Shown piece after piece: positions 7,741-48,587 of a DNA stretch of 64,000 nt. The notes beneath the pieces are model-generated. The model was given only the letters and a program-made list of their open reading frames with translations. It searched no databases and had not been told where the DNA came from. How positions within the stretch are numbered: position 1 is the first letter of the stretch; each line of letters begins with the position of its first letter. Source of the DNA: Amoebophrya sp. A120. Taxonomy: Eukaryota; Protista; Dinoflagellata. The DNA is taken from NCBI GenBank assembly GCA_905178155.1, contig CAJINV010000006.1, forward strand, positions 1,117,876 through 1,181,875, written 5' to 3'. The position numbers and the translations under genes are program-made.

Positions 7741-10700
7741 ATGCCCTCCTCGTTCGTCCAGCGTTTGCTGGTGATTTTTTTTCACCTAGCACTATGAAGT
7801 GCAAAAATGTCTGGGTCTGGAAGAGTCATGCCGTTTCTGCATGACACAGAAGGTGTGGCATGGAAGCTCTAGCATCACAGGTTTCGAGAAGCTTCCGCCA
7901 TGCCGAATTCGCATGACAAATCCCCCACTTTGGTGACAGAAAGTGGGCAGCTTTTGCCACCTATGCCTGAGAGATGTTTCTGTGTTCTAAAATGCGCATC
8001 ACAAGTTTGTATTCTTCCAGACCCAGACACTTTTGCAGTGCATAGGCACTGCTGCTCGCCGATACCGCGAGGAAAAGCCTGCTCGTCACCGCCACTACCG
8101 CCGTCGATGTGCAGCTCACACCGCCGGAACTCGTGTTCACCGGCACCTTCTTCGCGCCCCAGGGGTATGTGCTGTACGCAGGGCAGCGGTACTCTTTGGG
8201 TATCGCTCTGGACAGCATGTTTTGGCCCGCAGACTCCGTGCGGCTGATGCTCGTGGAATCCTCGCAATTTTTAAACGACGTGATGGCGGGCTTGGGACTG
8301 TGTCCGCAGATATGCACTGCAAAAGTACCGTACTCGTATAAATGCATGACAAATTCCCTCAGGAGCATGAGAAAGTCAATTTGTAATGCGGATTTACCTT
8401 GAGGAAAAAAATTTATTTTTTTATATGAAGGACTGCCATTAGATTTAGAATTAGTACGCGTATCAGATACTTTTGCACAGCATAGCAGAACCGCATCTAC
8501 GACGTGAACCCGCCCTACGACGGGAGCATGACCATTCCGCAGTCTTCCCTGCAGTACCCCCGGCAAGGCCGGTTGGTCTGCAGCCCCGCGTGCGAAGTGG
8601 ACTACCCACCACCCGACCACGTGGGCGCCGTGATCAACCACGGGGGGATCTTATCAAATGCAAAAATGTCCTCTGGGTCTGGAAGATTGCGGGGTTTGTC
8701 ATGCTTGTCTGGCATGACCAAAAAGTTTGTGATGCGTGTCCAAGAAGAGACCCTTTACCTTTTGCCTGTCATGCAAAAACGCAGTTTGTCATGCGAAAAA
8801 CGCAACACAAAGAGGCGCAGGCATTTCTCATGCTTGCCTGTGCATTACAGAGCATTTACTATTCCCAACGCAGCATTACAAGTTTCCAGACCCAGACATT
8901 TTTACACTTGATAGATCTTCCGGGTCTGCGTGTCGAAGTTTGGCACGTTTGGGCTATGGGGCTCTCAAACGTTACATTCTCGAACTGTCACATGATGAAT
9001 TTGTCATGCAAAAGCACCAGCATCATCATCCACACGATCAACCTGTTTCGCATGACAAATTTGCGCAGGGCTATTAAACACGACCTAAATTATCTGTGCG
9101 GAATTTGTAATGCTACAAGACAAGTGCAACCCCCCCCCTTTCACGACTTTTCCCATTCTTGCATCCCATTCTTGCATTCTACTTTGTACGCATGGGACCA
9201 GCTGCAGGCTGCTGCTTCCTCATAGCAGTTAGCCTGGTCGGTCCCTGCACAGTTTGTGAGCACTATAAGTTGGATCGTTGGCGAACGTTAAACGTGCTCT
9301 GGTGGCGACAAGTGTGGACCGTTGGCGAACGTTAAACGTATGTTGGCGATAAGTTGGACTGGTGGCGAAAGTAAGGTAAAGCTGGCGTGAGTAGGATGAT
9401 GTGCCCGAGCGTGATGGCGATGGCTTCGGTCCGCCTGATTCCGCGACTCGGTGGCCTGACCATCTGCGGAAAGGTGCCCTATGGGTTGCGTTTGTGGTTT
9501 CGGTCGGTTTAGCATCACAAATCTATGTAACAGTTGAGAGTGTAACATTTGAGAACGCCATATGGGCTGAACGACGCGACTCTGGTGAACGTCGACTCGG
9601 TGACGCAAGACGCGGTGTCTTACCGGTATCAAATGCAAAAGTGTCTGGGTCTGGAAGAGTCAAACTTGTGATGCTGCATGTGGCTGCTAAACAAATCTGT
9701 ATTGCATGAGCAGGAAGAGAAATCAAATTTGTCTACGCGGGGAGGGCATTTGTCATGCAGGATGCGCATCGATAAGCGCTCAAAAAATCTGTGATGCTAT
9801 GGCATACATCACAGACATCATGGATCGTAGAAAATGCGCATGACAAACTTGTCCTCTTCCAGACCCAGACATTTTTGCAATCTATAACCGGGTGGTGGGT
9901 GTGACGGATGACTGTCAGAACGAAGCGATGCTGAATCCGGCAACAAGTACTTCTTCTGCGGGTAGTTCTAGTTCATCTTCGGGAAGTGCGGCGACAAAGT
10001 CGTGCTTTTCCAACCGCCGGTTTTACTGCTTCGGCATACACTCGCTCTATTCCACCTTCTACGCCAACCACATCTACGACGAGGAGTTCCTATCCTGTGC
10101 AAAAGTATCGTACTCGTATTACTACAATCATGCATTACAAATCTTTCATTTAAGGTAAATCCCCATTACAAATTTTATGAAAATAATTTGTAATGCATTT
10201 ATACGAGTACGATACTTTTGCAATGCATAATTCCATTGTAAAATCTTCTACCAGGGCGCGAGCTACCAGATCGGGGAGTTGGCGAACGTGATTGGCAGGG
10301 TGCAGCACATATGCTGTGCAAAAGAGCATCGCACTCGTATAAATGCAAGTCTTGCATTACAAATCTTTTTATTAAGGCAAATCCACAACCACATGACAAA
10401 TTCCATTTCTCATGCTAAGGAAACTTGTATTGCAATTTATAGCTAGTACGATGCTTCTGCAATGCATAGCGCATGCAGCTCTCCTGGCACACGGACACTT
10501 CGGAGTCCTGTCCCATGCAGGTGATCGGGACCAATTTTGTTGACAACAGCTACCGCAGTCTCGACACCGCGTTAAAAAGAGCGCAGCCGAACTTCAACTA
10601 CAGTAGCAATTTCGAACAGGTGCAAAGATTCCAGAAATCCGAATTTACGTTGGGGAAAGTGGTCGATACTCTGTCTAGTGGGTTTACCTACCGCCTGTGT

Positions 10701-13700
10701 TTCTGTCCTGATTTCCCCGGGTTGGGCACCTGCCTGCAGCCGAAGCACTACCGGCAGAATGTGGGGAAAGTTGTGGTCATGATGCACAGTTACGGGGTTT
10801 TGCTGAACGGAAATTTTGGCAGGATAGACAGCAGTAGTACAACTAACGCAACGTCGTCTGCAGGTCCAGGTTCATCTACATCGACATCTACAACTGCATT
10901 AGCAGCTCCATCAGAAATTTCCGATTTTGACACGCGGATGATGGTTGCGCCGGTCTCAAAATTCACATTAGTAATTGACTGCGGCGGGGAGGAGTGTGGG
11001 AATACGAAAAATCTGACGGAGAGAATCAAGATTGTGAATCGCCGAGCCGCTAGTACTCCGTCAGAACAATCTTCATCCGGCAGCAGCACAACTGTTAATA
11101 CACAGACGCGCCCTTACTGGGACTCAGCCACAGTTTATCCCAGCACGAAAAAAGTGTTACAGTTACACATTTGTAGTGAATTCAGCAACACAAATTTCTC
11201 TGCATGATGAGAGAAAAACTTGTAATGCAGAAATCCTACGGGAAAACAGCTATGAAACGAGGCTCCTATGCATATCCGGCATGACAGAGCTTGTCTAGAC
11301 TATGTGTGTAACTGTAACACTTTTTCTTTGCGATACAATTTTTTCCGATTTTTGCAACGCACAAAACGACACGGAGTTGTTACAGCTTTCGCCGAACGGG
11401 GTCTGGGAAAAGGAAAGAACAAGCGTGACAGCGACAAGTACGGCTAGTAGCCACACAAATGCGCAAGACCAATCAACGCAACAACAGCAGCAGCAGCAGC
11501 TTCAACTCCTTTTGCAAGATTTCTACAAACTCCAACACGTCGCCCCCGTGAATCTTGAGGGAATCAGCACAAAAATCGCTTTTCCGGACCTATTTTTGAA
11601 ACCGCGCACAGTATCCTGTGCAAAAGTATCGTACTCGTATAAATGCCAGACTAGCATGACAAGTCTGGTTTCTTGGGTAATTGTTTAGCATGACAAATTT
11701 GATTTTTGATGCTGAGCTAATTTGTAATGCAATTTATACTAGTAGCATGCTTTTGCAGTGCATACACAGCGGCCAATAGCAATCTACCGGTCAGCGGAAT
11801 CTTGGACGTTTGCTTCTCCCACAATATGCATTGCAGATGTGTTTGGGTCTGGAAGATTCCGAGATTTGTCATGCGGTTTTTCCAAGCCCTGTCAAGTCTG
11901 GAATGCGGGGCCTAGCATGACAGGTTCTCGTGCAGCCCCTTCGTGATGCCTATTGTGCATGAGAAATACCCTCTCGTCAGCATGGCCAGAAGTGAGCACC
12001 TTTTGCCAGTCATGCAACACAGATCTTTGTATGATCCTCAACTCGCATCACAAGTTCGGATCCTTCCAGACAACCAGGGATATTTGCACTTGATACACAA
12101 CCCGGTGCTGCATGACTTTTTGAACGAAACAAGTCACGGTATTTTTCCCGCAGAAACTACGCTGAACGACACGTCGTTGATCCGCCAAGCAGCATTTTCA
12201 TCTTCAGCCGCGGATAGAAGTACTGGTGGCAACAACAATTACTACGACCCCGGTTCCATTTTCGCACTACAAACTCGCGCGAGAGTGTTCTTCAAGACGG
12301 GCGAAGTGCATTTGCACGGATTAACAATACAGCACGTGGACGATGCTGCGGTGGACATCACGGATACGAAGCCGATCATCGTGGAAACGGATTTTCGAGT
12401 GGCGGTGTTGCCGTTGCTATCCTGTGCCAAAGTTATCAACTTGTATTGCAATCATGCATTACAAATCCTTTTGTTAAGGTAAATCCGCATGACAAATTTC
12501 ATTTCTCATGCGGAGGAAATTTGTAATGCAATTATACGAGTACGATACAATTTTTGCACTGCATAGATGCTAGGGGTGTACGAAACGAGTGGAATTTTTA
12601 CCAACACTTTGGAAGTGAATAGTGGGAGCACATCAACAACGACGACCGGCAATACCAATACAAATGCGAACATTACGTCGGAGAACACTGTGAAATTTTT
12701 GTGGGACCTGGATGCGGAGTTTGGGAATAGCCAGTGCTATATGGATCGCAAATATGTCTGGGTCTGGAAGAATACAAACTTGTGATGCGCATTTCAGAAC
12801 ACAGAAAAGTCTCTCATGCACAGGTAGCAAAAGCTGCCCACTTTCTGTCACCAAAATGGGAGATTTGTCATGCGGATTCGGCATTGTGGAAGCCGAAGCT
12901 TCAGCTTCTCGAAACCTGTGATGCTAGAGCTTCCATGCCAGACCTTCTGTGTCATGCAGAACCAGCATGATTCTTCCAGACCGAGACCCAGACACTTTTG
13001 CATTTGATATGCTACCGCTACGACATGCATCCTTACAGCGCGACAAACAAACCGCCGATCACACACAGAGCGCACCGAGATGCGGATTTGGTGCCGAGGG
13101 GTGGCGGTGTGAGGACATCAAGCGGGGGCACAGGCACTGCGAGCAGTAGTGCAAGTAGCGGAAGCGGCAGCAGCACGAATGGCACTTCTGCAGCAACATC
13201 AACTCCAGCAGGATCATCAACTATCCCACGAAAGAACAACTGTTTCACTGTGATGGTTTTGCAAGATCTGCATCACAAGTTTGTTGCACATGACACAGAA
13301 AATTTGCCATGCGCGTTTCCCAAGGCACGGGAATAAAACACGCTTAGCAATCCATTGTGTTGCAGGTGTAGCAAGACAAACACTTTGGTGTTTCGTTCTC
13401 TGCGTCACAGGTTCACAGTGAAACAGTTTTTTCTTGCGATATCAACACAGATCGAACAAACTGAGTACGAAGTGGCATCGAGCTCTTCCACGGGGTACTT
13501 CAGCAACCGATACTGTCTAGACTACAGCACAAACTGCACGACCACCGGTCTTGCGAGTGCGAAGGTGAGTAACAAAATTTTGTTCGACAACATGTTACCC
13601 AAAGTTCCCGGCGTGTTCGCGGTGTGCTACTGCGCTGAGGGGTGTAGCGGGTCCTCTTCTGCCAGTGTACTAGACTCTAGTACTTCCGCATCGACGACGA

Positions 13701-16700
13701 CCTCGAGCAGCATGACAAATTCGAAAAACATTCCCCTCGCAACCCATCTTCAACGCTGGATGCTGGTCGATCGGATCACCGTCGCGGGGCCGGAGATGTA
13801 TCAAGTGCAAAAATGTCTGGGTCTGGAAAAGTGTAGACTTGTCATGCAGATTTTCGCTGACCCATGAGGTCTGGAATGTGGGACTTAGCATGACAGACTC
13901 GGCGAGGTCTCTGCCATGCCTATACTGCATGAGAAGCTCCATCCTAACTTGGTCAAAAGTGGACAGCTTTTGGTAGTCATGCAACACAGTTTTTTACATG
14001 ATTCAGATTTACCATGACAAGTTGCAATCTTCTAGACCCAGACATTGTAGCAGTTGATAAGATGGTTCCGGTAACGAAGAAATTCCAGCTGACCAGCCGG
14101 GTGATGGGCAGTCTGTCGATTTTAGGGTTTGGGTTCAGCGTGAAAAACCGGATCAGGCTGCTCCCGAAAGCGTTACTGCAAGAAATAGCTGCAACTACTG
14201 GGACGAACAATAAAGACGTGAGTGGGGCGAGTGTTCAGACCAGCACCGCAGAGAATTACCTTGCCTTGTGCCAAGAGCCCTTTCCGAACAGAACCGTTTC
14301 GGGGATCCAATCCTGCTGGCCGAACTACAACGGGTGTAGGGACCACGGGATTGATGAAGCAGTGAACAACCAAATCGCAGACTTAGAAGTGACAATCCTC
14401 CACTCGCACGTGTTTCCCATCCCGCGAGTGATCACGAGGCTGGAGTCCACAACGGAAGGAGCTAGTACAACCGCTGGTGGTGATAGTAGTACAACCAGCA
14501 TGACAAATAACATAGGCGAGGACTATTCCACCCGATCCACTTGGGTCTACTTCTCCGGCGTCCATTTACTTTCGAAAAACGACTATCCTGTGCAAAAGTA
14601 TCTGATACTCGTATTGCAATAAATGCATTACAAATCTTTGTTTTATGGTAAGGCAGCACTACAAACTTTATTTCTCATGCTGAGAAAATTTGTAATGCAT
14701 TTATACGAGTACGATACTTTTGCATTTCATAACGACCGGATTCACTTCGAAGACTTGGAGATCCCGCAACGGGAAGTGTCTCACCAGCTGTACTATTTGG
14801 ACTTAAACCGCCTCCTTCGCGGCGGCATGTCGGGGCACCGGATCTTGGAATCGGACAACGCGAACAATCGGGTCCGGATCGGCTTGAACCTGTTCGGGAT
14901 TGACGAAAGAAAATCACCTAGTTTCGATTTCCTCCCGAAAGTGAGACTGAACGAGGGAAAGTGGCGCAGGTCAAATGTTTTATCCGTGCCGTATTTGTTT
15001 GCGCCCAACCCGGTGAACGAAGAGGTCGTGATTTGCTGGAGTATATCCTGTGCAAAAGTATCGTACTCGTATTGCAATCATGGATTACAATTTTTTTTCT
15101 CAAGGAAAAACAGCATTACAAATTTTATTTCCCATGCTGAGGGAATTTGTAATGCTAATGCATTTATACCAGTAGCAGTACGATACTTTTGCAGTTCATA
15201 GAGTAGTGCTGAGATGAAACACAGCATCCCGAACGACGCAGATCCAAGTGGGGCGACGAAGATTGAGTCGTTGAAATACGAGTCCTTTGTCGGAGAATTA
15301 TTAGTCCCACTTCCCGCAAACTTCCGGCAGACAAATCTCGGTTTGTTGACAACCGAGTACAGTGCCGTACAGCCGGTGATTTTGAGTTTTGTGACGAACC
15401 GAGATAAACACAGCTACTACCAGTCGGTGGTGAACGAGATGCAGTTGCGGATTGCGGTGGAAAACACCGAGTATTTGAAAATTTTCCGCGCGGACCACGC
15501 AGAGGGGTACGGGTTGACCCCCGGCGGGGAGGTGGAGCGTGATTTGACGGTGAACGAACTCCACGAGCGAAAGCAGTCGGTGTGCGGGAGGGTTATTAAA
15601 GAAGCATGGTCAAACGACACCATGAACGGGATTTTTGAACAGCAGGCGAATTCCTTTGGGTATGAGACGGGGTACTTTCCGGAAAACCCCATCACGAAAA
15701 ACGACCCGCTGAAACACAAAATTCTCAACCCAGTCGGCTCCTCCGGCGGGTCGTTTCCGGTCCCGCAGGGGTGCTACTACGAGCAGCAAAACGGAAAATT
15801 TGAGTTCTTCATGGTGTTTGAGAAGGGGAATGGGTTTGTAGGGGGAGTGGAGTACCAGATCGTCTTGAACGTGCAGTATTTGGAGAATTTGCAGCAGAAT
15901 ACGAATGTATCCTGTGCAAAAGTATCGCACTCGTAGTAATTGCAAACATGCATGACAAATCTCCATCCCAAGGTAAAACAGCATGACAATTTTCATTTGT
16001 CATGCTGAGGTAATTAGTAATGCCATTACTACGTAGTACGCTACTTTTGCAATGCATAGAATGGCGGGGGAAGTAATGTGGGTCAACATCATCAGCCGAT
16101 CCAGGTGGCAACGTTTGGCGACATCGAGTTCGAGCGAAACCGTATCGTATTCAAAAACGTCCCCACCTCCCCAGAGCTGTAATGCAAATCTGCATGCTGA
16201 AACTGTTTCTCATGCGGAGGCCCATGAGAAGCCTTGTCTAGTCGCGTTTTGGAATCAGCATGATATAACTACTAGATTTGTGATGCTGCTTACCTACCTC
16301 AAACAGCACTGCACTACGAGTCCAAATTTGTCATGCAAAACAGCCAAACCTTGCGGATTTGTCTAGCCAAAGACTCACCATCTTGACTATGGGGTAGGGA
16401 CGTTTTCACATGGGATAAACCGAGTGATTGAATTAGACGACGTGTACCCGAGTTTTGGGCCAGTGCGAAGGCGGCAGATCTCGGACTCTTTTTTATCTTC
16501 CGGCATGTTGACAGCCGAGGAAGAGGCGCTGTTTGGCGGAAGTAGTAGTGCAACTACTGCTTCTAGCGGTGATTCAACTACTGCTAGTGGGCAGTCAGCG
16601 CAGTCAGCGCCACCTGTCCTCTTCCCGGGTGCACGAGCCAAATTCGCGAACAGCGCACTCAATGTGACGGAACAGCTTGGTATTAACGCAGCATCTACTT

Positions 16701-37700: not shown

Positions 37701-40700
37701 ATTCGTCACGCTGAGCTAATTTGTAATGCAATTTTTACTACTAATACGATGCTTTTCTTTGCACAGGATAAAGAAGTTTTGGACGCGATTGGGGGGACCA
37801 CATCAAGTGATGGAACGTCGACAGGAGCAGGGTCATCTTCATCGTCCAGCACCCCGAGAAGTTTGTTGACAAAGGACGAGGGCCAACATCAACTCACGGT
37901 TCGTGGGCAAAATCTTCGTGGAAGTCCCCAACTGGTTGACGTTGCAGAGGCTGTGCGGCACACAGGAGACAACCACGACGACAGGTCTACTCTAGTAGCG
38001 CAGCCACAGCCACGTCAGCTACAAACTAGTCTAGCCGACATCCCGCGGGAGCACCTCGCGTTCACCAAAGTGCCGTATCAAAATGAAAAATCCCCCCGTC
38101 CCATACTCAAACAGGGAATTCGTGATGCTGATTTGTGACCACAAATCATGTTGTCATGCTCAAAGGGAAATAAAGATGCGGACTGTGGTGCTGGCTGGCC
38201 TGGGAAGGCCTTGCATCTTCAGCATAACAGGAGGCAACTGGAAGTGGTAAACAGCATGACAAACTGCCTGCAAACAATTGCGCAAATACGTCTCTTGCCC
38301 TTCTAGCAATACAAACCGATTTGTGTACGCAAATCCAGCATCACAAATTTCCTGTCCGATGGAGGGAGCGAAGATTTTTCCTCACAATATGCCGGTCGTT
38401 GTGGCCCGACGGGTGAAGAACGAGATCCATCTTTTCTTCCCCTACTTAATTCCCGCGACCTCTTCTACAAGGATAAAACTCCGGTTCAACAGCGTCACTC
38501 TTCCCTCCATTGGTGGCGAAACCAGTTTCGACTTTCAAACTTTCTACCGGGGCGAGTTGATGGACGAATCCCTTAGCTGCTGCAGTCCAAACGCTGGAGG
38601 ACCTTCTGCTGCAGACGCTGATCCAAGTACTGGTGCACCGGGAACATCAGGAGCTCCTGTCAACCCCAACACTCCCTTCGAGTCCTTCCGGATTCCGCGC
38701 AAGATCCCGATTTTGTTTGAATTCCTGGACTCTGTGCAACTCACCCCGGCGTTGTTGTCCACTTTCATCAGGAAGGAGAACGGCATGGGCCTCCACCCGG
38801 TGGAATCGTCCTTACCAGTCCGATACGGGGACGACGCGTTTATACAACTGGAATTTTTGGCGAGTTCGGACTTCCAATATCCTGTGCAAAAGTTGTATCG
38901 TACTCGTGTTGCAGTCATGCATTACAAATCCTTTTGTTAAAGGTAAATCTGCATTGCAAATTTTATTTCTCATGCTGAAATTTGTAATGCATTTATACGA
39001 CGAGTACGATACTTTTGCAGTTCATATTCAATATATCAACCCAGCGACGGGAATGTTGGTATCCACCGCATCTTATGCAATGCAAAAGCATCGTACTAGT
39101 ATAAATCGCATGACAAATTCCATCAGCATGAAAAATGGAATTTGTAATGCGGATTTAGGTTAAGAGGGAGATCTGTAATGCATGACTGCGATTACTACGA
39201 GTACGATACTTTTGCACAGGATACATCTTCCAGTTCCACGCAGCAGTTGCCAACGGTGTTGGAGATTGTCAGCCCGGTGAGGGAAGTTGTGAAGAACGCG
39301 GCTACGGGGGAGGTGGAAACAGAACCGTTGTATGATATGAGCCAGATTTTATCCAACAACAACTTCCAACTCCGCGACGCCACGGAATGCTTGGTGGTGA
39401 CGAGTCAGCACCCGATTATCAAGTGAAAATAGATTAGAACAAATATGTCCTCTGGGTCTGGGTCTGGAAGGATGCAGCTTGTCGTGCGAAGTTTTGATGA
39501 CAGAAAAATCTGTGCTGCAGGAGGAACGAACCACAAAGGTTGCTCACTTGTTGCTAGGAGCTAGGCAATAGGCGGATCATTGCTCATGCGGCAGGATAGG
39601 CATGAGGACCAGGAAGGTCTCGCAAAATCTGTGATCTTCCTTCTGCAACACAACTCCAGACCATGTGCATGGTCCGCGAAGACGAGATGCATGACAAGAA
39701 CTCTTGCGTTCTTGATCCAAAGAACCCGGACAACATATTTGAATTTGCAGTGGATAGCGACGTACCCGGTGGAATTGTTCGACGGCAGCTGCTATTTCCC
39801 GTTACTGTATGTGAAACGGGTTTACAGTACTACTGCTAGTGCGTCTTCAAGTGCTGCTGGCGCGACATCTACTTCAACCACAGCCGCACCAAAGCAAGGC
39901 CGTTTAGCGTTTGAGTTAGTGTCTACCGAGGCGGAGATGCAACAAAATTTCTACGACTTGCTGCTCAACAAGGTGCAGCTGCCGAAGCACCAAGGTACAG
40001 CTAGCACATCAGGACAGAATACTAACGCGGCGGAGAAACTTCCTGACAATTACCAAAAGGATTTTAGCAACACAAACGTCGAACAGGTTTTATTAGAGGA
40101 GAGAATCTACAATGCGGCTTTGGACCAGAACGCGCAAAACATGACCAGCATCGTGCACGCCCAGGAAATTTTGTACCAAAAACTCCCGGAACTGAAGAAG
40201 CTTTTCGAACGAAATAGGATCGTGTTTGGCCGGAAGTATTTTCTCGAGTTCAAAGTGAAAGCGCCGGAAGCTGTGGCGACGAGTAGTAGTGGTGGTGGTG
40301 GTGGGGATGGTAGTAGTACTGGCACTGTTGTAGCAGCAGCAGGAACAGCGTCCTCTACTTCCTCGTCGGGCAGTGCAGCAACTTCGTACACCTTTACAAC
40401 CACCTCCGCACCTCCAGCCCCGAAGCCGAACAAAGCCCTGTCCTCCACGACCAACTGGCAGGTGTTTTTCACGAACAAAAACAACATTGAGAAACAGCTG
40501 TACCCGTTTGATAGAGGGGTTTTCGAAGATTTCAAGCTGTACTTTAAAACAAAGTTCCAGACGATAAAATCCGCCAGGACCATGATACAGATGTACGACA
40601 ACGTTGAAGCGACCTCGATCTACAACGAAGACGTCCAAGCCATGGGGCTGGCGCCGGATACGCTGAACGACGTTTATTTGGAGGTCGAGAACTTCGTGCC

Positions 40701-43700
40701 CCCGCCGTTGAGTACTAGTAGTACATCTTCTTCATCTTCAGCGGCAATTTCAAGTACAACATTGAGCAGTGGTAGTAGCAGTACATCAGCCTCTACTTCG
40801 GTTATCAACGTGAACAGCCTAGAACTGTACCCCGCGAGTAAGCACTTCGAGGTTCCCGACGGACTTTTCCTCACCAGTGGTTGCTTCTCGGAGAATCAGT
40901 TAGACGCATCTACTTTAGCAACAGCGATGGTCGCCGGAGCAGCTGGTTCATCTTCAACATCTCTCCTGCAACTACAGGACCAACAGCAAATATGGATGTG
41001 TCAGGTTTGAAATCGTCAAAGTTGAAATAGTTTGTCATGCATGAAACGGATACCAGTTAGCCCTACAGTTTGTAGTCGGTGCATGAGAAATTTTCCCGGT
41101 CCTGGAAGCGAGTCTGTCATGCGGTTTAGGGCAAAAGAGCTGCCTTCTGTCATGCTAGTTAGCAGGCGAACTTTTGAGCCTTACCAGGACTATAATCTGC
41201 CTCCCGTGGGTCCTCTGCAATAGAGTCGCGTTTCCGTTTTGTATCGCATTTTATGCATTACAAATTATTCCAACTTTGACGATTTCAAACCTGACGCTTC
41301 CATAGCAAACGCAACAGGAATACCTGGAATCCATTCTCGCCTGTATCAAATGTAAAAATGTCTGGGTCTGGAAGATTAGAACTTGTCATGCTAAATCTGA
41401 ATGATGCAAAAATCTGTGTTGCGTGGGTGCCAAAAGCTGTCTGCTTTTGACCAAGTTGAGAGGGGGTTTCTCATGCAGGAAAGGCATGATAGAGACCTCA
41501 AAGAATCTGTCATGCTGGGTCTCGCATTCCAGACCTCATGGGTCATGGAAAACCTGCGTCGCAAATCTTGTATTCTTCCAGACCCAGACACTTTTACATT
41601 TGATAGCCTGTACGAAGCAGCAAAAGGCGGACTTGCCGTTCGGGAATAAGATCACCGGGATTTCTTTAACCGATCGGTTGAAGAAGCCGCAGGGGATTAA
41701 CTTACCCTTGAAAATAACGTTAAAAGTGAAGGCGAAGAAGTTGCCGTGGCAAGACGAGCGGCAAGCGGTAATGTCGACTGGCGCCCCTGTGACGGCAAAC
41801 ACCGTTACCGACGCCGCAAACTACTGGTATGGCGTTCTCAACTGTTACATTCTCAGCTGTTACATGAATTTGTCATGCAAAAATACCTTGAGCCGCCAGA
41901 TGGTGAAGCTGCTTCGCATGACAAATCAGGTAAGGGCTAGACAGCACCTAAATCTGTGCGGGATTTGTAATGCAAAAGGCGCGACCCTCCTCCTTTCACT
42001 TGTGCCATTCTTGCATTACAAATACAAACTCATGTAACAGTTGAGAATGTAACGTTTGAGAACGCCATAACTGGTACCTGATCGCAACAACCTTCAACGC
42101 CACGACCGGCCAGGTGATATGGAGTTCTCACACGTTACAGTTTTCTCAACTGTTAGTTACATGATTTGTCATGCAAAATGACCATGAGCCGCCAGACGAT
42201 CAAGTTGGTTCGCATGACAAATTCTCCCTCGGAAGGCTAAATAGCACTAGAATCCGTGCTGGTGCCAAATCTGTAATGCAAGACGCGCAAGGTTCTCCCT
42301 CTCACCTGTGCTATTCTTGCATTACGCATCCATCTAACAGTTGAGGATGTAACGTTTAAGAGCCCCATAGGTGACCATCGTCGGCTGGGACAGGATCGTC
42401 AACGCGGAAGTGGAAGAAAAATTGCCGCAACTTTTCCCGACGCTCGAAGCTAATTCAGACAAACTTTTAGTGAAGCAATTCAACATCAACTTTATCCAGG
42501 CGGCGTATTCCTTAGCGGCCACGCAGGTTTTGGTCAAAATTCAACTGCAACTCCGCTCGCCTTTACCCTTGTTATGGAACTGTCAGGATCGAAATTGACA
42601 AAATTGAAAAATTTGTGATGCATAAAACCGATCGCAGTTTGGAGCCCAATTTCTATGCGGCGCATGACAAATTTCGGCGTCATCGAAATCCAGTTTGTCA
42701 TGCCGTTTAGCGAAAGACGGCATCCTTTGCCATGCTACTTTAGCAGTGCTGCCCCAAACCCCAAACAGGCTGGCGATCGGCCTCATTTGCAATCCCTGCA
42801 AGACAGTCACTTCGTGCCTTGCATTTTATGCATCACAGATTATTTCAACTTTGTCGATTTCGATCCTGAAGCTTCCATACTTGTTCGGGAAAATTTACAT
42901 CCAGGCGCCGGTAGACTACCAGTTTTACTGTACGGGGTTGCGGGTAGTACAGGAGAACGTGGAGCCGAATTATAGTGTGGGGTATGCTGCAGATGAAGCA
43001 GGAGTTAGTCTTGCAACTGGAAGTAGTAGCACGACTTTACTCGACGCCACCGCAGCTAAAACTGCGGGCCAGCAACTGTACTACCAAAACCACGCGGAGT
43101 ACTACCTGAAAAAGCCGTTCTGCCAGCGGAATCCGCAGACAAAGTTTCTCCAGCGGTGCCAGCAGTATCAAATGTAAATATGTCTGCGTCTGGAAGACCG
43201 CAGAAGTTTGTCATGCTGTTTTTCCGTGACGCGACAGGTCTGGCATGCAGGCCCTAGCATTACAGGTCTTGAGAAGGTATCTCAATGCCTAATCCGCATG
43301 ACAAATTCCCTTTTTCGGTGACACAAAGTGGGCCACTTCTGCTGTGCGCGCATGACAGATTTTTGTGTGATTTGAGATGCGCATGACAACTTTGCATCCT
43401 TCCAGACCCGGACAGATTTGCAATGCATAAGCAGCTGAACCAAACGATACTAGCAGCGCAGCACGAAATCGAGGTTTTGCAAAACCGCACGGTGTACCTG
43501 CAAACGCTGTTCGCAACGAAGACGCAGTCTGAAATGAACACGTTGGAACGGGTATGCATTGGAAGTATACCTTTTTTGTGTAGGTCTGGATTTCGATTTG
43601 GTTTGTGATGCGAGATTTGAAGGAGAATTGCGGCTTCTTTTGTCGTGCTTGAGGCCATTTTGTTATGCCACGTACTGATAAGATCGGAACAAGCTTCCAG

Positions 43701-46700
43701 ACTGCACTACAGCAGACCGGCTTCGACTACCATCCAAGGAGCAGCAACACAAAAATCTCAATGACAAATCAGCTGCATGTTTCCGCCATACTCAGACATA
43801 CTTCCCTTCCATACCGGGAAATCTGGCGAACGGAGACCGTGAACGGAACGAAAGCGAAGGTTTGGAACCTCACTATGGGCTTGAACGAAACGAAATTTTT
43901 TTTCCAAAAATGCAAACCCTTTTCGGAAGTCATGTTGGACTTTGTGGAAGAGAAGATTTACACGAAACCTTCCTACGACGAACAGTTGTTGCTGTCTCCG
44001 CAACACAGATTCGATTCCTTGTCCACGCTTTTGACCCGCAACGTCCGCGTAAACAACGGGCAATTGACCGGGTTTGTCGTGCGCGAAGACAAGACCTGGC
44101 CGGTGGCGATCGACAACGCAAAAGGGAATTTGGACATTCTGCTCTACGCACAACTACCCTACACCCAACTGCCCCGGGAGGTGAAGGTGCCCGTACCCGA
44201 GTACGTGGCAGCTTCGGGATTTCTGATGTCCTCTTCGAGCAACACGGGAACTACCAGCGGTGCGACGACGACGATGCAACAAGGAGAAGAGGAATCTACG
44301 ACGTCATTAACGGTCGACTACTCGCAGTCGCGACACAATACCTGGACGATTTACATCCTAGACCGGTTTCAGCGAGTGCTGGATTCGAACGCGCATTACA
44401 AGGTGTCCGCAGCAAATGCCCCGGCGGAGCAGCTAGTAGAGACGGTAGGGGGAGGAGGAGGTGGAGGAGGAGCTGCAGGGGGCTTTAACACTGGTGTTGT
44501 TCTTGACAAAGTCTTGCACCAGGAAGACCTCGTGATAGACAAGGTTGGTTTGTTTTGGCAGAGCCGGTGTCGCTACCCAAATGAGGAGCAGGTGTTCTCC
44601 AGTTTACTCGGGGCACCGGTGTGTGACGAAGACGAAACGGCGGAGGACGAGGCATTTTCAACCGGCGGTGAAAAAGACGGCGATCAAATGAGCGATCTCA
44701 TGCCCCCCGCGGGGGGTAGCGCCAGTACCACGACTGCAGGAGGAAGCACGGGCGCGAGGAACGACACTGCTGGATATCAAATGCAAATATGTCTGGGTCT
44801 GGAACATTCCAAGGTTTGTCATGCACATTTTGCATGACCCGTGATGTCTGCGATGTATGCCCCAGCATCACAAATTTTTTGCGGGTATCTTGATGCCTAT
44901 CCCGCATGACAAATGCCTTCTCCGCGGAGCAAAAACTGGACGCCTCTTGCTGCTCATGCAACACTGACCTAAACGTCACGGGGGAAGTGCGCCGTGCAGT
45001 AGAGGCGTGCACAGGGGAGCTCGATAAGAAGGGGAAGCCCACGGAGATTGCAAAGCTAATCGACTTCACCGGGCAGGCGAACATCTTGCGCGAGATCGAA
45101 ACCCCAGAGCAGCCCGCGCAGGACCTCCAGACTGAGTATTGCAACATTGTGAGAGAGGTCTGCAGCTGGTCGGACTTCGACATCACGCCGGACCTTCCGA
45201 ACCTGCCCGAGCTGTACGCGGACTCCACGTTGCCCCGCCCCCGCAGCTGGCGGATCCGCGAGATCAGGTGTGCGTGCATCCCCTGTCTCCGAACAAACTC
45301 GCTTAGGCCGAAGAAGCTTGGCTCACTCCGCCTCGCGTTCATCCACATGCGAGTCAACCAGCAGCAGGCCACAGAGGAAAAGTTTGCGGCGGCGTTTGCA
45401 CCCCCGCCCCCGCCACCGCAGCCACAAAGACCGCTGCCAAAGCGCAAGCACAATGACACCCCGCCGCGGGTCAAGCAGGCGCTCGAGCTGCGGGGGGCAA
45501 GCAAGTCCCTCCCGGCGGGGGTCACTTACAACAAGAAAACGCAGAAGCTGTTAGTGACGGTCCGAGTGAAGATGGACGACGACGGGGAGACCTACCCACT
45601 GAGCAAAGTGGTCGACCCGGAATTGTCCGCAACGGCCGAGGAGGCGCTGGAGGCCGCACAGCAAGCCCGCAAGGACGTGCTTGCGAACTATCGCGAGCGG
45701 GTCGACGCCATCCGGGCGCAACGCGCGCAGCGAGCTGAGGCCCCCGCCCCGCCGCTCGGGGGTCTCGCACAATGAAGTCGAAGAAAGGAAAGAATTTGTT
45801 CTGAAATTGAAATCAAGAGGTTCTTCACGGTGAAGTTCCTCAAATAGACTCCTCATTTTGAGTAGAAGTCTCGCGTACTAAACGCGAACACTGTAAACTG
45901 TAAACTGTAAATACAGATTTTTTTAGATTCCAAAAATAGCATCACAAATTGCATTCTTCCAGACCCAGACATTTTTGCAATCCATACTGGAGCAGGAGCA
46001 TTAGCTACGACTTCTGCAACGACATCCTCATCATCGGCAAGAAACCTTGAGGCTGCTCTTCAGAACGTACATGGTAAAAAAAGAAGAACGACCGACAACG
46101 AAGCGGGAGCGGCTACAAGAAGTAGAGAAGATGAAGAAAGTACTACAGGAGGTCCAGGTGGTACGCCCACGCAAAAAGAAGTACAACTCGTACCACATCA
46201 ACGGTCCCTCCAATCGTCCATTGGCAGCAGCAGCAGCAGCTCTCCTGCAGCTGTCATCTCCGATAGTACAACTGGATCATCCACCTCTGCAACCGTGGAT
46301 CGGAAATGCGTGCTGCCAAAAGATTACTACTACTTCCGGAAACAAACCTCTACTTCCGCAGGATCAGTCCCGATCCCCACCGGCTGGACGAGGCAGCAGG
46401 CGGAATATCCAGCGCAAAAGCTCTTGTTTCGTAGTGGTTGTAGAAGTACTCATTGCAGTTGTGACCACGCATCACAGATTTCTGCGTTGATGGCGTTCAT
46501 GATCCCCCGAACTGAATTAGTTGCTTGATCTTGATGTCGAATTCCATGATAGATTTTCTCGTTGAAAAACAAATGTCAATGTGTGTTGCGAAAAGCTCCA
46601 CCAGTAGCTCCTGTACACCGAAGATTCTTTTGCAAAGTGCATACATAGGCCACCACCGCAAAAAGCCGGCCCCACGTGCAGCGGTCGCTGTTTCACATCG

Positions 46701-48587
46701 GTTTTGAGGTCAAAGCGGACATTTTGAAGAAACACCAGTTTCCCGTGATATCCGTGGAGTTGCCTATCAAATGCAAATGTGTCTGGGTCTGGAAGACTGC
46801 GAAATTTGTCATGCTTGGTTGTCTAGCATGAGCAAAAAGTTTGTGATGCGTGTCCAAGAAAAGACCCTTTTGCTTGTCATGCAAAAACGAAGTTTGTCAT
46901 GCGAAAAACGGAACAAAAAGCCTCGCAAATATTTCTCATGCTTGGCTGTGCATTACAGTAGAGCATTCACTATTCACAGCCCAGCATTACAAGTTTCCAG
47001 ACCCAGCAGACATGTTTGCGATGCATATTGCCGGATTTGGTACCAGTGGACGTGGCGATGCTCATGAGCAAGGCGGGGTCGGGTCCTCAACAGGGTGTAC
47101 AATTACCCACTGCAGCAATATCAAATGCTGGGAGCAGCAGCAGCAACGGGGCATTAGAGACGGTTGTAAGCATCCAAGACGGCTTTCAGTTCATCATTCA
47201 GCACGCCACGGACATCGTATGAGAGTGCACAACTCCCCCTCTCCCTCATTTGTATTGCATGAACAGCAATACAAACGGCAGCGGCCCTGGAGCCTGTGCA
47301 TGAAAAATTTATGTACCTACTGTAGTACAACTGCTACTGTTTGGGCTTTCGAAATTTGTCATGCATAATAGTGAAGCAGGGGAGCAACTGGAATTGTGGA
47401 TTTTGCATGAGAAATGAGAACGAGGGGGAGTTGTGCACTGTCATACATCGAGGTTTTGACGCCGGAGTTCCCCGCACCCGACTGGGGCTGGATCCCCACG
47501 GGGCAGCCCGGCTCGGAGTTCAAACCGATAACCAAGCTCTTTTTCCGGCTCGCCGGGAAGATCAACGGCAAAAGCTGGTGGGACCGCGACTTTCCCGGGC
47601 CCGTCACCAAAACTTCCGCGTCGCAACTCCTCACTGCCAAAGAGCAAGGGGAGGTGTTTCTGCGAAAAAACCAGCACTTTCTGATCAATATCCTGTGCAA
47701 AAGTATCGCATTCGTAGTAATTGTATCTACGCACTACAAATCTCTTTTTCAAGGTAAATCAGCATTACAAATTTACTTAATTTGTAATGCTGCGCTAGTT
47801 TGTCATGCAGCTTATCCTAGTGCGATGCTTTTGCAATTCATAATCAAGGTGCCCGTGGAGTGGCCAAGGTACGAAACTGGGTTTCCAATATGCATTGCAA
47901 AAATGTCTGGGTCTGAGAGGATGTAACCTGTGATGCGCATTTCAGAACACACAAAAATCTCTCATGCATAGGTAGCAAAAGCTGCCCACTTTCTGTCACC
48001 AAAATGGGGGATTTGTCATGCGGGTTCGGCATTGCGGAAGCTTCTCGAAACCTGTGATGCTAGAGCTTCCATGCCAGACCTGCTGTGTCATGCAGAAACA
48101 GCATGACCACTCTTCCAGACCCAGACATTTTTACATTTGATTTCCGAAGTTGAAGAACAATTTCGTGAAGGTGAAATTCTGCTTCGATTTCCCCTTCTGT
48201 TTGGAGCAGCTGGCGGAGTACAGTGTACCTGGGCCGGTAGGATACCACGTCGTGCCCTTGCAGTTTGGAAGCAGTAGTAGCACAAATCCAAGGGCGTCCT
48301 CTACCGATGGTGCATCAACAGCTGCGTCTTCTGCAGCACAACATTCTGGCCTGTGGGAGGAGTTTCAGCTGAAGACGCCGGAGTGCGAGGTGCCCGTGTT
48401 CGAGAACACAGGCATCGGTAGTGGCAGCCGCGGATGGGAGAGCAGTGCGACTTCTATTCATTTTCGGAGAACTGGAACAAGGTGGTCGGCGGGGCAGCTG
48501 CTGCTCGGTGGACAAACCTTTTCCCAGCAGTCGCTGTTGTTCTTTGGCGGCTTTGTCGGGCTTTGGGTGCTGCTCGTCCTCACGTGA
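7741..48587 (+). CDS. Giant (~7,336 aa) predicted secreted, GPI-anchored surface protein; multi-exon gene split by 75 TIR introner elements at 74 sites
   Basis: ATG at 7741 gives MPSSFVQRLLVIFFHLA|LLLADT (signal-peptide-like) after removing the first element. Removing each element plus 5 nt keeps the frame open at every junction and links ORF-track pieces (8109, 8504, 9892, 10473, 11302, 11943 ... 43665, 46295, 47414, 48150). Span 40,847 minus 18,836 removed = 22,011 nt, divisible by 3. Ends SLLFFGGFVGLWVLLVLT-TGA. Confidence 0.88.
7793..8044. mobile_element. Introner family A
   Basis: TIRs; TSD AGCAC/GGCAC; removal restores frame. Confidence 0.93.
8311..8484. mobile_element. Introner family B (TIR core TGCAAAAGTATCGTACTCGTA)
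   Basis: TSD GCAGA/GCAGA; frame restored. Confidence 0.93.
8652..8913. mobile_element. Introner family A
   Basis: TSD GATCT/GATCT; frame restored. Confidence 0.93.
8955..9562. mobile_element. Introner family D with ~340-bp internal insert
   Basis: TATGGGGCTCTCAAACGTTACA...TGTAACATTTGAGAACGCCATA; TSD TGGGC/TGGGC. Confidence 0.9.
9627..9886. mobile_element. Introner family A
   Basis: TSD ACCGG/ACCGG; frame restored. Confidence 0.93.
10091..10229. mobile_element. Introner family B
   Basis: TSD GTTCC/ATTCC; frame restored. Confidence 0.92.
10310..10468. mobile_element. Introner family B
   Basis: TSD GCACA/GCGCA; frame restored. Confidence 0.92.
11136..11335. mobile_element. Introner family F-like
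   Basis: AAAAAAGTGTTACAGTTACAC inverted repeat; TSD CAGTT/CAATT. Confidence 0.9.
11612..11764. mobile_element. Introner family B
   Basis: TSD CACAG/CACAG; frame restored. Confidence 0.93.
11825..12095. mobile_element. Introner family A
   Basis: TSD CACAA/CACAA; frame restored. Confidence 0.93.
12418..12565. mobile_element. Introner family B
   Basis: TSD GTTGC/GATGC; frame restored. Confidence 0.92.
12740..13009. mobile_element. Introner family A
   Basis: TSD TGCTA/TGCTA; frame restored. Confidence 0.93.
13222..13441. mobile_element. Introner family E (AACTGTTTCACTGT inverted repeat)
   Basis: TSD TCAAC/TCAAC; frame restored. Confidence 0.93.
13799..14059. mobile_element. Introner family A
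   Basis: TSD AGATG/AGATG; frame restored. Confidence 0.93.
14584..14731. mobile_element. Introner family B
   Basis: TSD ACGAC/ACGAC; frame restored. Confidence 0.93.
15044..15200. mobile_element. Introner family B
   Basis: TSD GAGTA/GAGTA; frame restored. Confidence 0.93.
15908..16058. mobile_element. Introner family B
   Basis: TSD GAATG/GAATG; frame restored. Confidence 0.93.
16143..16417. mobile_element. Introner family G (AAAACGTCCCCACC inverted repeat)
   Basis: TSD AACCG/AACCG; frame restored. Confidence 0.92.
16783..17019. mobile_element. Introner family D
   Basis: TSD TCTGA/TCCGA; frame restored. Confidence 0.92.
17060..17215. mobile_element. Introner family B
   Basis: TSD GCTGA/GCTGA; frame restored. 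Confidence 0.93.
17310..17579. mobile_element. Introner family A
   Basis: TSD ATCTA/ATCTA; frame restored. Confidence 0.93.
17634..17767. mobile_element. Introner family B
   Basis: TSD CTTTT/CTTTT; frame restored. Confidence 0.93.
17844..18171. mobile_element. Introner family H (CTCCCCATATC inverted repeat), right end degenerate
   Basis: TSD CGTGT/CGTGT; frame restored. Confidence 0.88.
18225..18488. mobile_element. Introner family A
   Basis: TSD GTGTG/GTGTG; frame restored. Confidence 0.93.
19852..20104. mobile_element. Introner family A
   Basis: TSD GGGGG/GGGGG; frame restored. Confidence 0.93.
21200..21467. mobile_element. Introner family A
   Basis: TSD ACGTC/ACGTC; frame restored. 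Confidence 0.93.
21523..21738. mobile_element. Introner family I
   Basis: TSD TCAGC/TCAAC; frame restored. Confidence 0.92.
21848..22170. mobile_element. Introner family H
   Basis: TSD CTGTG/CTGTG; frame restored. Confidence 0.92.
22667..22816. mobile_element. Introner family B (ends CATG)
   Basis: TSD decayed CTTCC/TCTCC; frame restored. Confidence 0.85.
22915..23178. mobile_element. Introner family A
   Basis: TSD TTTTG/TTTTG; frame restored. Confidence 0.93.
23232..23476. mobile_element. Introner family D
   Basis: TSD TTGGT/TTGGG; frame restored. Confidence 0.92.
23540..23756. mobile_element. Introner family F
   Basis: TGTGTAAGTGTAA inverted repeat; TSD TGGTA/TGGTA. Confidence 0.93.
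24094..24372. mobile_element. Introner family G
   Basis: TSD TCAAC/TCAAC; frame restored. Confidence 0.92.
24918..25092. mobile_element. Introner family J
   Basis: TSD AAACG/AAACG; frame restored. Confidence 0.9.
25310..25469. mobile_element. Introner family B
   Basis: TSD GATTA/GATTA; frame restored. Confidence 0.93.
25549..25762. mobile_element. Introner family E (inverted relative to 13222)
   Basis: TSD TAAAA/TAAAA; frame restored. Confidence 0.93.
26143..26296. mobile_element. Introner family B
   Basis: TSD GTTCA/GGTCA; near-identical to 39074-39223. Confidence 0.93.
26352..26629. mobile_element. Introner family A
   Basis: TSD CCACG/CCACG; frame restored. Confidence 0.93.
26785..27069. 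mobile_element. Introner family G
   Basis: TSD TCGAG/TCGAG; frame restored. Confidence 0.93.
27141..27408. mobile_element. Introner family A
   Basis: TSD CCTAC/CCTAC; frame restored. Confidence 0.93.
27517..27731. mobile_element. Introner family E (first of back-to-back pair)
   Basis: TSD CTGGC/CTGGC. Confidence 0.93.
27737..27945. mobile_element. Introner family E (second of pair, opposite orientation)
   Basis: TSD CTGGC/CTGGC. Confidence 0.93.
27980..28289. mobile_element. Introner family C
   Basis: TSD AAGCG/AAGCG; frame restored. Confidence 0.93.
28544..28656. mobile_element. Introner family B (short)
   Basis: TSD CGAAT/CGAAT; frame restored. Confidence 0.9.
28701..28857. mobile_element. 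Introner family J
   Basis: TSD ACGAA/ACGAA; frame restored. Confidence 0.92.
29625..29775. mobile_element. Introner family J
   Basis: AAATTTCCCGTACAT inverted repeat; TSD CAATG/GAATG. Confidence 0.92.
30390..30559. mobile_element. Introner family B
   Basis: TSD CTGTG/CTGCA; frame restored. Confidence 0.9.
30607..30858. mobile_element. Introner family A
   Basis: TSD CTTCT/CTTCT; frame restored. Confidence 0.93.
30899..31211. mobile_element. Introner family C
   Basis: TSD GTCCA/GTCCA; frame restored. Confidence 0.93.
32410..32832. mobile_element. Introner family G with internal 115-bp insert
   Basis: TSD decayed GCTGC/CCTCC; frame restored. Confidence 0.85.
33620..33886. mobile_element. 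Introner family A
   Basis: TSD TGAAG/TGAAG; frame restored. Confidence 0.93.
33962..34129. mobile_element. Introner family B
   Basis: TSD GTTTT/GCTTT; frame restored. Confidence 0.9.
34202..34410. mobile_element. Introner family F
   Basis: TSD GACTT/GACGT; frame restored. Confidence 0.92.
35188..35496. mobile_element. Introner family C
   Basis: TSD AAGTG/AAGTG; frame restored. Confidence 0.93.
36392..36543. mobile_element. Introner family B
   Basis: TSD GAATT/AAATT; frame restored. Confidence 0.92.
37003..37272. mobile_element. Introner family A
   Basis: TSD CGATC/CGATC; frame restored. Confidence 0.93.
37377..37542. mobile_element. Introner family B, degenerate
   Basis: Starts GATCCCGTGG; TSD lost (GATAT/CATGA), but removal of element + 5 nt restores frame. 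Confidence 0.75.
37614..37770. mobile_element. Introner family B
   Basis: TSD AAGAA/AAGAA; frame restored. Confidence 0.93.
38076..38389. mobile_element. Introner family H
   Basis: TSD TGCCG/TGCCG; frame restored. Confidence 0.9.
38878..39026. mobile_element. Introner family B
   Basis: TSD TCCAA/TTCAA; frame restored. Confidence 0.92.
39074..39223. mobile_element. Introner family B
   Basis: TSD CATCT/CATCT; frame restored. Confidence 0.93.
39417..39756. mobile_element. Introner family A, degenerate/expanded
   Basis: TSD CCGAT/GCGAC; frame restored. Confidence 0.85.
40991..41304. mobile_element. Introner family C
   Basis: TSD GCAAA/GCAAA; frame restored. Confidence 0.93.
41344..41605. mobile_element. 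Introner family A
   Basis: TSD GCCTG/GCCTG; frame restored. Confidence 0.93.
41828..42069. mobile_element. Introner family D
   Basis: TSD ACTGG/ACTGG; frame restored. Confidence 0.93.
42118..42369. mobile_element. Introner family D
   Basis: TSD GGTGA/GGTGA; one register (42114-42370) is GT-AG. Confidence 0.93.
42573..42879. mobile_element. Introner family C
   Basis: TSD CTTGT/CTTGT; frame restored. Confidence 0.93.
43166..43429. mobile_element. Introner family A
   Basis: TSD AGCAG/AGCAG; frame restored. Confidence 0.93.
43553..43813. mobile_element. Introner, singleton family K
   Basis: TATGCATTGGAAGTAT...ATACTTCCCTTCCATA; TSD ACGGG/CCGGG; frame restored. Confidence 0.85.
44906..45775 (+). 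CDS. Cargo ORF fragment with degenerate C2H2-like finger and C-terminal AP2-like domain
   Basis: CACIPC...SLRLAFIHMRVNQ (45269-45361) and LPAGVTYNKKTQKLLVTV...EEALEAAQQARKDVL (45509-45682). The ATG at 44906 lies in the host introner, so the native start is missing. Confidence 0.55.
   Translation: MTNAFSAEQKLDASCCSCNTDLNVTGEVRRAVEACTGELDKKGKPTEIAKLIDFTGQANILREIETPEQPAQDLQTEYCNIVREVCSWSDFDITPDLPNLPELYADSTLPRPRSWRIREIRCACIPCLRTNSLRPKKLGSLRLAFIHMRVNQQQATEEKFAAAFAPPPPPPQPQRPLPKRKHNDTPPRVKQALELRGASKSLPAGVTYNKKTQKLLVTVRVKMDDDGETYPLSKVVDPELSATAEEALEAAQQARKDVLANYRERVDAIRAQRAQRAEAPAPPLGGLAQ
44962..45911 (+). mobile_element. 5'-truncated non-LTR-retrotransposon-like insert nested inside a family A introner
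   Basis: Interrupts the family A sequence between CATGCAA and TACAGATTT. GC-rich open frame to the stop at 45775, then a short 3' UTR and an (ACTGTAA)x3 tail at 45890-45910. Confidence 0.65.
46406..46643. mobile_element. Introner family B-like, degenerate
   Basis: TSD lost (CGGAA/CATAG); removal of element + 5 nt restores frame. Confidence 0.78.
46765..47027. mobile_element. Introner family A
   Basis: TSD TTGCC/TTGCC; frame restored. Confidence 0.93.
47218..47445. mobile_element. Introner family L
   Basis: TATGAGAGTGCACAACTCCCCCTC...GAGGGGGAGTTGTGCACTGTCATA; TSD CATCG/CATCG. Confidence 0.93.
47689..47842. mobile_element. Introner family B
   Basis: TSD ATCAA/ATCAA; frame restored. Confidence 0.93.
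47889..48142. mobile_element. Introner family A (close inverted copy of 7793-8044)
   Basis: TSD TCCAA/TCCGA; frame restored. Confidence 0.92.

Follow-up and report, generated by a model that had tools for sequence, protein, structure and literature searches.

The locus at 7741-48587 on the plus strand of a 64,000-nucleotide (nt) stretch of Amoebophrya sp. A120 (contig CAJINV010000006.1, positions 1,117,876 to 1,181,875; the whole stretch is termed the window below) is very probably a single gene that has been colonised 75 times by the introner elements published for this strain (Farhat et al. 2021, BMC Biol 19:1, PMC7789003), which resemble miniature inverted-repeat transposable elements (MITEs), are left in the DNA and are spliced from the transcript as the element together with one copy of a flanking 5-nt repeat. 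The phenomenon is already published; the locus is a rediscovery of it at an extreme gene and holds no new kind of element.

Gene model and the rule of element plus 5 nt

The pattern is visible at 7500-10500, where GC-rich coding sequence alternates with AT-richer blocks that begin with TAT(C/G), end with (G/C)ATA and carry a 5-nt repeat on both sides. A strict scan of the window returned 29 pairs with an exact 5-nt repeat and at least 12/14 complementary end bases. A looser scan returned 93 candidates; with the repeat comparison shifted out of register by 7 nt, 17 were left.

The gene model was searched by a codon walk from the ATG at 7741-7743 (plus strand), which has an in-frame stop 33 codons upstream. 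Jumps were allowed only over an element plus 5 nt, the path was chosen by best score or shortest length, and long or weak jumps were re-read by eye. Dynamic programming with manual curation placed 75 elements at 74 sites between 76 exons, the last of which ends with the TGA at 48585-48587 (plus strand). After removal, the coding sequence was 22,008 nt including the stop and encoded 7,335 amino acids (aa) with zero internal stops; 18,839 of the 40,847 nt were removed (46.1% of the locus). An earlier note on this DNA had described 75 inserts at 74 sites, an insert fraction of about 46% and one uninterrupted frame of 22,011 nt running from a signal peptide to a hydrophobic tail. The scripted removal named there as a check left neither frameshift nor stop, and the frame, the counts and the fraction were all reproduced, with the length corrected to 22,008 nt. 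Strongly hydrophobic 19-aa windows of the protein were found at residues 3-21 and 7317-7335 only, which fits a signal peptide-like start and a C-terminal hydrophobic tail as predicted from the sequence, and the product is probably a surface protein.

The offset of 5 nt was specific. When each element was removed together with k nt, the frame was open for k=5 only; the in-phase values k=2 and k=8 led to 3 stops and to a premature stop, respectively, and all other values of k gave 175-206 stops. A corresponding count was made of exact flanking repeats of n nt around TAT..ATA pairs with a good inverted repeat. In the window, 42 such repeats were found at n=5 and at most 4 at any other n in the range of 2-10; in 256 kb of other A120 contigs, the numbers were 43 at n=5 and at most 7 otherwise.

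The left ends of the 75 elements were TATC in 43, TATG in 31 and TATT in 1 (TAT in 75/75), and the right ends CATA in 36, GATA in 31 and TATA or AATA in 4, with a mutated last base in the remaining 4. Complementary end bases amounted to at least 9/16 in 72/75 elements. The flanking direct repeat matched at 5/5 positions in 53 elements, 4/5 in 16, 3/5 in 5 and 2/5 in 1, and no base preference was visible in the repeat or its flanks, so the ends, the 5-bp direct repeat and the absence of an obvious target consensus were all as the earlier note had put them. The elements measured 113-423 nt, save two enlarged ones of 608 and 1,212 nt.

The rule held also where the repeat had decayed, being obeyed at six elements with a repeat match of only 2-3/5. 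It was likewise obeyed at four elements that are normal for their families except that the last base is mutated, namely 17844-18171 (~325-nt family, right end ..AATG, repeat CGTGT exact), 22667-22816 (~150-nt family, ..CATG, CTTCC/TCTCC, the two copies being separated by a slash where they differ, here and below), 32410-32832 (~280-nt family, enlarged to 423 nt, ..GATC, GCTGC/CCTCC) and 47889-48142 (~260-nt family, ..GATT, TCCAA/TCCGA). The element at 46406-46643 is decayed, with a 2/5 repeat and ends that were unpaired in the fold, and removal of element plus 5 nt still restores the frame. The exact 5-nt length in all families sampled, and a rule that is independent of repeat identity, are modest additions to the published description. 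Candidates at 20303, 33373, 34721, 34959 and 44339 were rejected as chance matches; they are in frame, stop-free and GC-rich and have no relatives.

Transcripts, borders and the machinery of removal

Homology searches were run with single exons, and the joined 7,335-aa model was only string-compared. The longest exon, searched against protein representatives, retrieved three 100%-identical fragments; one of them is EukProt GSA120T00013552001, which equals NCBI CAD7953382.1, "unnamed protein product, partial [Amoebophrya sp. A120]" (A120 / RCC4398), and lies on a 4.8-Mb contig. Two further single-exon searches for public protein models found no match. In the public A120 annotation the gene is present only as partial models of 120-618 aa. 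Those of 205/206 aa and 618 aa can be found letter for letter in the rule-derived protein, and they run across 8/75 junctions exactly as predicted by the rule. The elements concerned are 19852-20104 (~260-nt family, GGGGG), 21200-21467 (~260-nt family, ACGTC), 21523-21738 (TCAGC/TCAAC), 21848-22170 (~325-nt family, CTGTG), 22667-22816, whose junction is matched in spite of its mutated end and 3/5 repeat, 22915-23178 (~260-nt family, TTTTG), 23232-23476 (~240-nt family, TTGGT/TTGGG) and 23540-23756 (~210-nt family, TGGTA). A metagenomic homologue, 30% identical, runs across one junction with a gap of at most 1 residue. The public gene models thus argue for removal from transcripts at these 8 junctions. 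This support is indirect because our own mapping found too little expression: a DNA run, a presumed set of RNA contigs and two runs of raw RNA were mapped over 17600-23599, where the presumed RNA contigs reached a depth of 0-4, within exons only, and the raw RNA runs contributed almost no reads.

The borders are not those of U2-type GT-AG introns. GT-AG, GC-AG or AT-AC was impossible in any equivalent register for 71/75 elements; 1/75 can be read as GC-AG and 1/75 as GT-AG, the latter being 42118-42369 (~240-nt family, GGTGA). When the elements were folded with their flanks, the ends were paired in 73/74, the stem closed at the first and last nt in 50/74, and the median z-score was -6.2. Both 5-nt copies were single-stranded at the foot of the stem in the predicted folds. 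The register of the cut was informed by five sites. Public models require the upstream copy at 21523 (k>=4) and 22667 (k>=1), and keeping the downstream copy creates a stop at 29625-29775 (~155-nt family, CAATG/GAATG), 37374-37542 (singleton, CGCGA/CATGA) and 46406-46643; keeping the upstream copy never does. Since all five informative sites favour the upstream copy, the sequence suggests an intron made up of the element and the 5 nt that follow it.

The course of events would then be as follows. The coding sequence would have been invaded 75 times by small, non-coding, high-copy MITE-like elements, each creating a 5-bp target-site duplication. The elements would stay in the DNA and leave the transcript as non-canonical introns, and with the element and one 5-nt copy out, the frame that preceded insertion would be back. 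The predicted hairpin may bring the exon ends together. Since the offset persists at degenerate repeats (at 22667 this is borne out by a public model), the distance to the stem, and not the letters of the repeat, would set the cuts. Both orientations were found within families, which favours a structural signal, with the caution that the elements are palindromic and their orientation is uncertain.

Several points weigh against a single gene spliced in this manner. No spliced-junction reads were found over 17600-23599, the gene being near-silent in the RNA runs, and the public models cover a limited part of the junctions. Five sites informed the register, and the constraint was tight (k>=4) at one only. 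The element at 46406-46643 may be another kind of intron because it lacks a hairpin and its repeat matches at 2/5. The element at 47689-47842 (~150-nt family, ATCAA) measures 159 nt with its 5 nt and is in frame and stop-free; its retention would add 53 residues and keep the frame open, so the frame test cannot show its removal. In the public annotation the locus is broken up into partial models, so that the open frame alone argues for a single 22-kb mRNA.

That split, the very low expression in the examined runs and the blank Pfam search of 9 long exons of the gene would agree with several genes, or with a decaying pseudogene that merely tolerates its inserts. This is very unlikely, however: a stop-free frame of 7,335 codons after 75 insertions cannot last by chance, the two strongly hydrophobic segments are the two ends of the protein, homologues of the gene are present in other data sets, and the partial public models abut or overlap in the same reading frame. 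Elimination of the elements from the DNA instead of the RNA, as in the programmed elimination of ciliates, is suggested by the look of precise excision between short direct repeats, but its probability is close to negligible. In the DNA run, contigs continue across the borders between element and exon with unique depth at its normal level (17858-18248 and 18463-19978 are examples), no predicted junction was matched among the DNA joints listed, which stem from other copies of the repeat families, and the published RNA-seq work treats the elements as introns (PMC7789003).

If the single gene with RNA-level removal is retained, the removing enzyme would most likely be a modified spliceosome, as the literature proposes. 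A rather unlikely competitor is a non-spliceosomal machinery, for example a hairpin-recognising endonuclease with a ligase, which would release a linear or circular intron. It would account for the 71 elements with no usable GT-AG, for a hairpin that closes exactly at the element ends, for a rule kept at decayed repeats and for the tolerance of both orientations; U1 small nuclear RNA has been reported missing and a distinct splicing mechanism suggested (PMC7789003), and the euglenid introns offer a precedent (PMC11282704). On the other hand, U2, U4, U6 and nearly all spliceosomal proteins are reported in A120 (PMC7789003), and a review (PMC11282704) describes a modified U2 spliceosome in Fritillaria that handles MITE-derived non-canonical introns. 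Rfam searches of the genome for U1 and U2 were both blank and are uninformative, because U2, which is reported present, was also not found; Rfam gave no match on the window. The dedicated machinery for removal invoked by the earlier note is already a published speculation (PMC7789003).

Element families and the search for a mobilising enzyme

BLAST clustering of the elements in the gene gave about 10 multi-copy families and 12 singletons; the earlier note had counted about 12 sequence-unrelated families. The families differ in their ends beyond TAT(C/G). The genome searched comprised 115.5 Mb in 401 contigs. The 264-nt element at 18225-18488 (~260-nt family, GTGTG) has thousands of genomic copies: 2,909 candidates were counted at first look, and all 40 that were scored matched at 90-95% identity over the full length (positions 1-264 or 2-264).

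The coordinates of the other elements, obtained from the frame search and curation, are given here by family with their repeats and without assignment of a strand. The ~260-nt family further includes 7793-8044 (AGCAC/GGCAC), 8652-8913 (GATCT), 9627-9886 (ACCGG), 11825-12095 (CACAA), 12740-13009 (TGCTA), 13799-14059 (AGATG), 17310-17579 (ATCTA), 26352-26629 (CCACG), 27141-27408 (CCTAC), 30607-30858 (CTTCT), 33620-33886 (TGAAG), 41344-41605 (GCCTG), 43166-43429 (AGCAG) and 46765-47027 (TTGCC), with 37003-37272 (CGATC) being of the ~260-nt type. Members of the ~150-nt family lie at 8311-8484 (GCAGA), 10091-10229 (GTTCC/ATTCC), 10310-10468 (GCACA/GCGCA), 11612-11764 (CACAG), 12418-12565 (GTTGC/GATGC), 14584-14731 (ACGAC), 15044-15200 (GAGTA), 15908-16058 (GAATG), 17060-17215 (GCTGA), 17634-17767 (CTTTT), 25310-25469 (GATTA), 26143-26296 (GTTCA/GGTCA), 30390-30559 (CTGTG/CTGCA), 33962-34129 (GTTTT/GCTTT), 36392-36543 (GAATT/AAATT), 37614-37770 (AAGAA), 38878-39026 (TCCAA/TTCAA) and 39074-39223 (CATCT), and a short member lies at 28544-28656 (CGAAT). 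The ~155-nt family is also found at 24918-25092 (AAACG) and 28701-28857 (ACGAA), the ~210-nt family at 34202-34410 (GACTT/GACGT), the ~240-nt family at 16783-17019 (TCTGA/TCCGA) and 41828-42069 (ACTGG), and the ~280-nt family at 16143-16417 (AACCG) and 24094-24372 (TCAAC). The ~310-nt family occupies 27980-28289 (AAGCG), 30899-31211 (GTCCA), 35188-35496 (AAGTG), 40991-41304 (GCAAA) and 42573-42879 (CTTGT). An element of the ~325-nt type lies at 38076-38389 (TGCCG) and one of ~285 nt at 26785-27069 (TCGAG). Further singletons are 39417-39756 (340 nt, CCGAT/GCGAC), 43553-43813 (ACGGG/CCGGG) and 47218-47445 (CATCG), the last being a singleton in the gene with a relative of the same terminal inverted repeat (TIR) start at 50398-50711.

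The ~215-nt family is represented by 13222-13441 (TCAAC) and 25549-25762 (TAAAA), with 11136-11335 (CAGTT/CAATT) being of the ~215-nt type, and by two copies head to tail within 27517-27945. The first copy (27517-27731) and the second (27737-27945) share the repeat CTGGC, which stands before, between and after them. The two are counted as one of the 74 sites and may have arisen by tandem duplication or by two insertions at a single site. The ~240-nt-family element at 8955-9562 (608 nt, TGGGC) and the above-mentioned 32410-32832 (423 against ~280 nt) are far above their family norms and probably hold nested sequence. The ~260-nt-family element at 44775-45986 (CTGGA) reaches its total of 1,212 nt by a nested 955-nt insert at 44958-45912 (plus strand), a 5'-truncated copy of a multi-copy element. 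Genomic copies of this insert share a 3' end with a short TAAACTG-type repeat and vary in their 5' starts, and it is probably a 5'-truncated non-LTR (long terminal repeat) retrotransposon. A diverged relative carries a 2,025-aa open reading frame (ORF) with no Pfam match, whose nearest ESM-Atlas clusters are reverse transcriptase and endonuclease, at a high score but as a lead only. A 293-aa ORF in the 1,212-nt element was considered as an AP2 domain and dismissed, since Pfam was blank and the ORF belongs to the nested repeat, not to the introner.

The same families were found outside the gene, with a 5-nt repeat that is exact or matches at 4/5, at 639-926, 6081-6357, 7515-7720, 50398-50711, 50974-51226, 61063-61369, 62146-62452, 62774-63008 and 63090-63247; the introner at 7515-7720 ends 21 nt upstream of the ATG of the gene. 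Neighbouring genes are probably split likewise by introners. A plus-strand gene about 80-94 kb past the window end (82.8 kb downstream) is interrupted by 10 or more introners that carry 5-nt repeats.

An 8-nt box, GCATNACA or its complement, was counted 220 times in the elements, compared with 2.3 expected from shuffles and 7 in the 22 kb of exons. The box is thus ~100-fold enriched; it was present in 73/75 elements, often ~40-50 nt from each end and in inverted orientation, and it contains a UNAC core. Its role could lie in splicing or, as a subterminal repeat, in the binding of a transposase, and its being shared is a small addition to the published description.

The inverted terminal repeats, the target-site-type repeat of a fixed 5 bp, the small size and the lack of coding capacity seen in the elements are all traits of MITEs. 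The earlier note had proposed a superfamily of non-autonomous transposons; the MITE-like nature and high copy number stand, but the autonomous partner, a transposase with such TIRs, was not found. No multi-kb element with the same TIR ends and 5-bp target-site duplications that encodes a transposase, as named in that note, came out of the following searches. A six-frame Pfam search of the genome was blank for hAT (dimerisation; hAT-like RNase H), Harbinger DDE and MULE domains, although genes interrupted by introners are hard to detect in this way. The long TAT..ATA pairs that had a perfect 5-bp repeat proved to be introners carrying nested inserts or held no transposase ORF. The genome is rich in integrase (rve) domains, which were considered as Ginger-like drivers, but the two families resolved were assigned to LTR retrotransposons because of their long direct terminal repeats. 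No integrase-bearing TIR element was found here, the rve matches having been followed to these two families.

One of them is a 7.05-kb LTR retrotransposon present in four copies on four contigs (~98.7% identical, LTRs of ~368 bp), with a 1,986-aa frame containing an integrase domain, 5-bp target duplications and LTRs of the form TATGAC...CACA. A ~12-kb LTR element with LTRs of ~805 bp, open frames of >3,000 aa and 4-bp duplications was recorded on two contigs. On one of these contigs, a distance of 14,985 nt separates two ends of the ~150-nt introner type that have the exact repeat TCATC, as though a giant insertion had split an introner.

Whether a single transposase type, recognising TA-starting ends and cutting with a 5-bp stagger, mobilises every family as its non-autonomous partner is evenly balanced. 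The common start (TAT in 75/75, TAT(C/G) in 74), a repeat length of 5 nt from which no family departs, whether in the window or in the 256 kb of other contigs, and the internal GCATNACA box, inverted near the ends like transposase-binding subterminal repeats, fit a single type of mobilising enzyme. The Copia-like LTR element of A120, which also makes 5-bp duplications and whose LTR starts with TATGAC, is a weak lead, and A120 TIR elements with integrase-like ORFs are reported by Gozashti et al. 2025 (PNAS, PMC12130899). Against this stand the blank hAT, Harbinger and MULE searches, in which exon-split genes are hard to see, the ordinary LTR nature of the two examined rve families, the long TAT..ATA pairs described above and the failure of Farhat et al. 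to find any transposase in A120 (PMC7789003). Moreover, selection could give the same uniformity if only duplication lengths matching the removal offset survive in coding sequence, and the box could serve splicing.

The two subjects may be joined in a speculative scheme, which we consider doubtful as a whole. Removal would work by a ruler that sets the 5' cut where the stem begins and the 3' cut exactly 5 nt beyond its end. This offset would equal the 5-bp stagger of the inserting enzyme, so that only matched elements can live in coding DNA, and one enzyme type would move all families by their TAT(C/G) ends and subterminal GCATNACA boxes. The enzyme may be integrase-like, as in the LTR element of A120 that makes 5-bp duplications and has an LTR likewise beginning with TATG.

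Relation to known introns and meaning

Introner elements with inverted and direct repeats and non-canonical splice sites had been named by the earlier note as described in Amoebophrya, and the literature bears this out. In A120, Farhat et al. reported 29,850 introner copies (~17% of the genome) with inverted repeats of 8-20 nt that start with TAT and, after ~seven variable bases, continue with a run of A, direct repeats of 3-5 nt that vary in position (5 bp in Fig. S19), non-canonical borders, hairpin-forming elements and strain-specific families (PMC7789003). Tens of introners in single A120 genes are described in PMC12130899. All traits of A120 introners that were tested were found at the present locus, namely the strain, inverted repeats starting with TAT, short direct repeats, non-canonical borders, repeated families and, by the indirect evidence of the public models at 8 junctions, removal from transcripts. 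It is the same organism with the same elements, and there is no difference in kind. Because the TAT start and 5-bp repeats are already in PMC7789003, the single rule is a sharpening of known facts, not a discovery. What differs from that paper is a repeat of exactly 5 nt in all sampled families, where 3-5 nt were reported; added here are the rule at decayed repeats, a hint as to which copy is kept, the GCATNACA box and a continuous 22-kb model. This full-length gene model, where the public annotation holds fragments, is a modest addition.

Introners of Micromonas and Aureococcus are reportedly DNA transposons as well, the intron being the element plus one copy of the duplication. Those introners are reported to supply or co-opt canonical GT/AG (Huff et al. 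2016), which the A120 elements do not. The A120 introners are set beside Fritillaria and euglenid introns in a review (PMC11282704). Introns of Fritillaria borealis (Henriet et al. 2019, via PMC11282704) are alike in being transposon-derived, with inverted repeats, target-site duplications, non-GT-AG borders and exact removal; they differ in their preferred borders AG-AC and AG-AT and in a shown dependence on a modified U2 spliceosome, whereas in A120 the downstream border is target-site sequence. The nonconventional introns of euglenids share variable borders, a pairing of ends that joins the exons, junction repeats like target-site duplications and a suspected spliceosome-independent route. 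Their pairing is a short CAG/CTG one a few nt inside the ends and they leave as circles, in contrast to the A120 stems of 15-25 bp from the first base.

The locus shows that the public A120 annotation fragments very large genes. The introners of Amoebophrya are among the clearest living cases of genome-wide conversion of transposons to introns, and the locus bears on the question of how a cell removes introns without fixed borders. For this question it is a compact natural test set, with 75 elements of about 20 families in one frame, and its 22 sites with imperfect repeats would show the exact cut positions in long complementary DNA reads.

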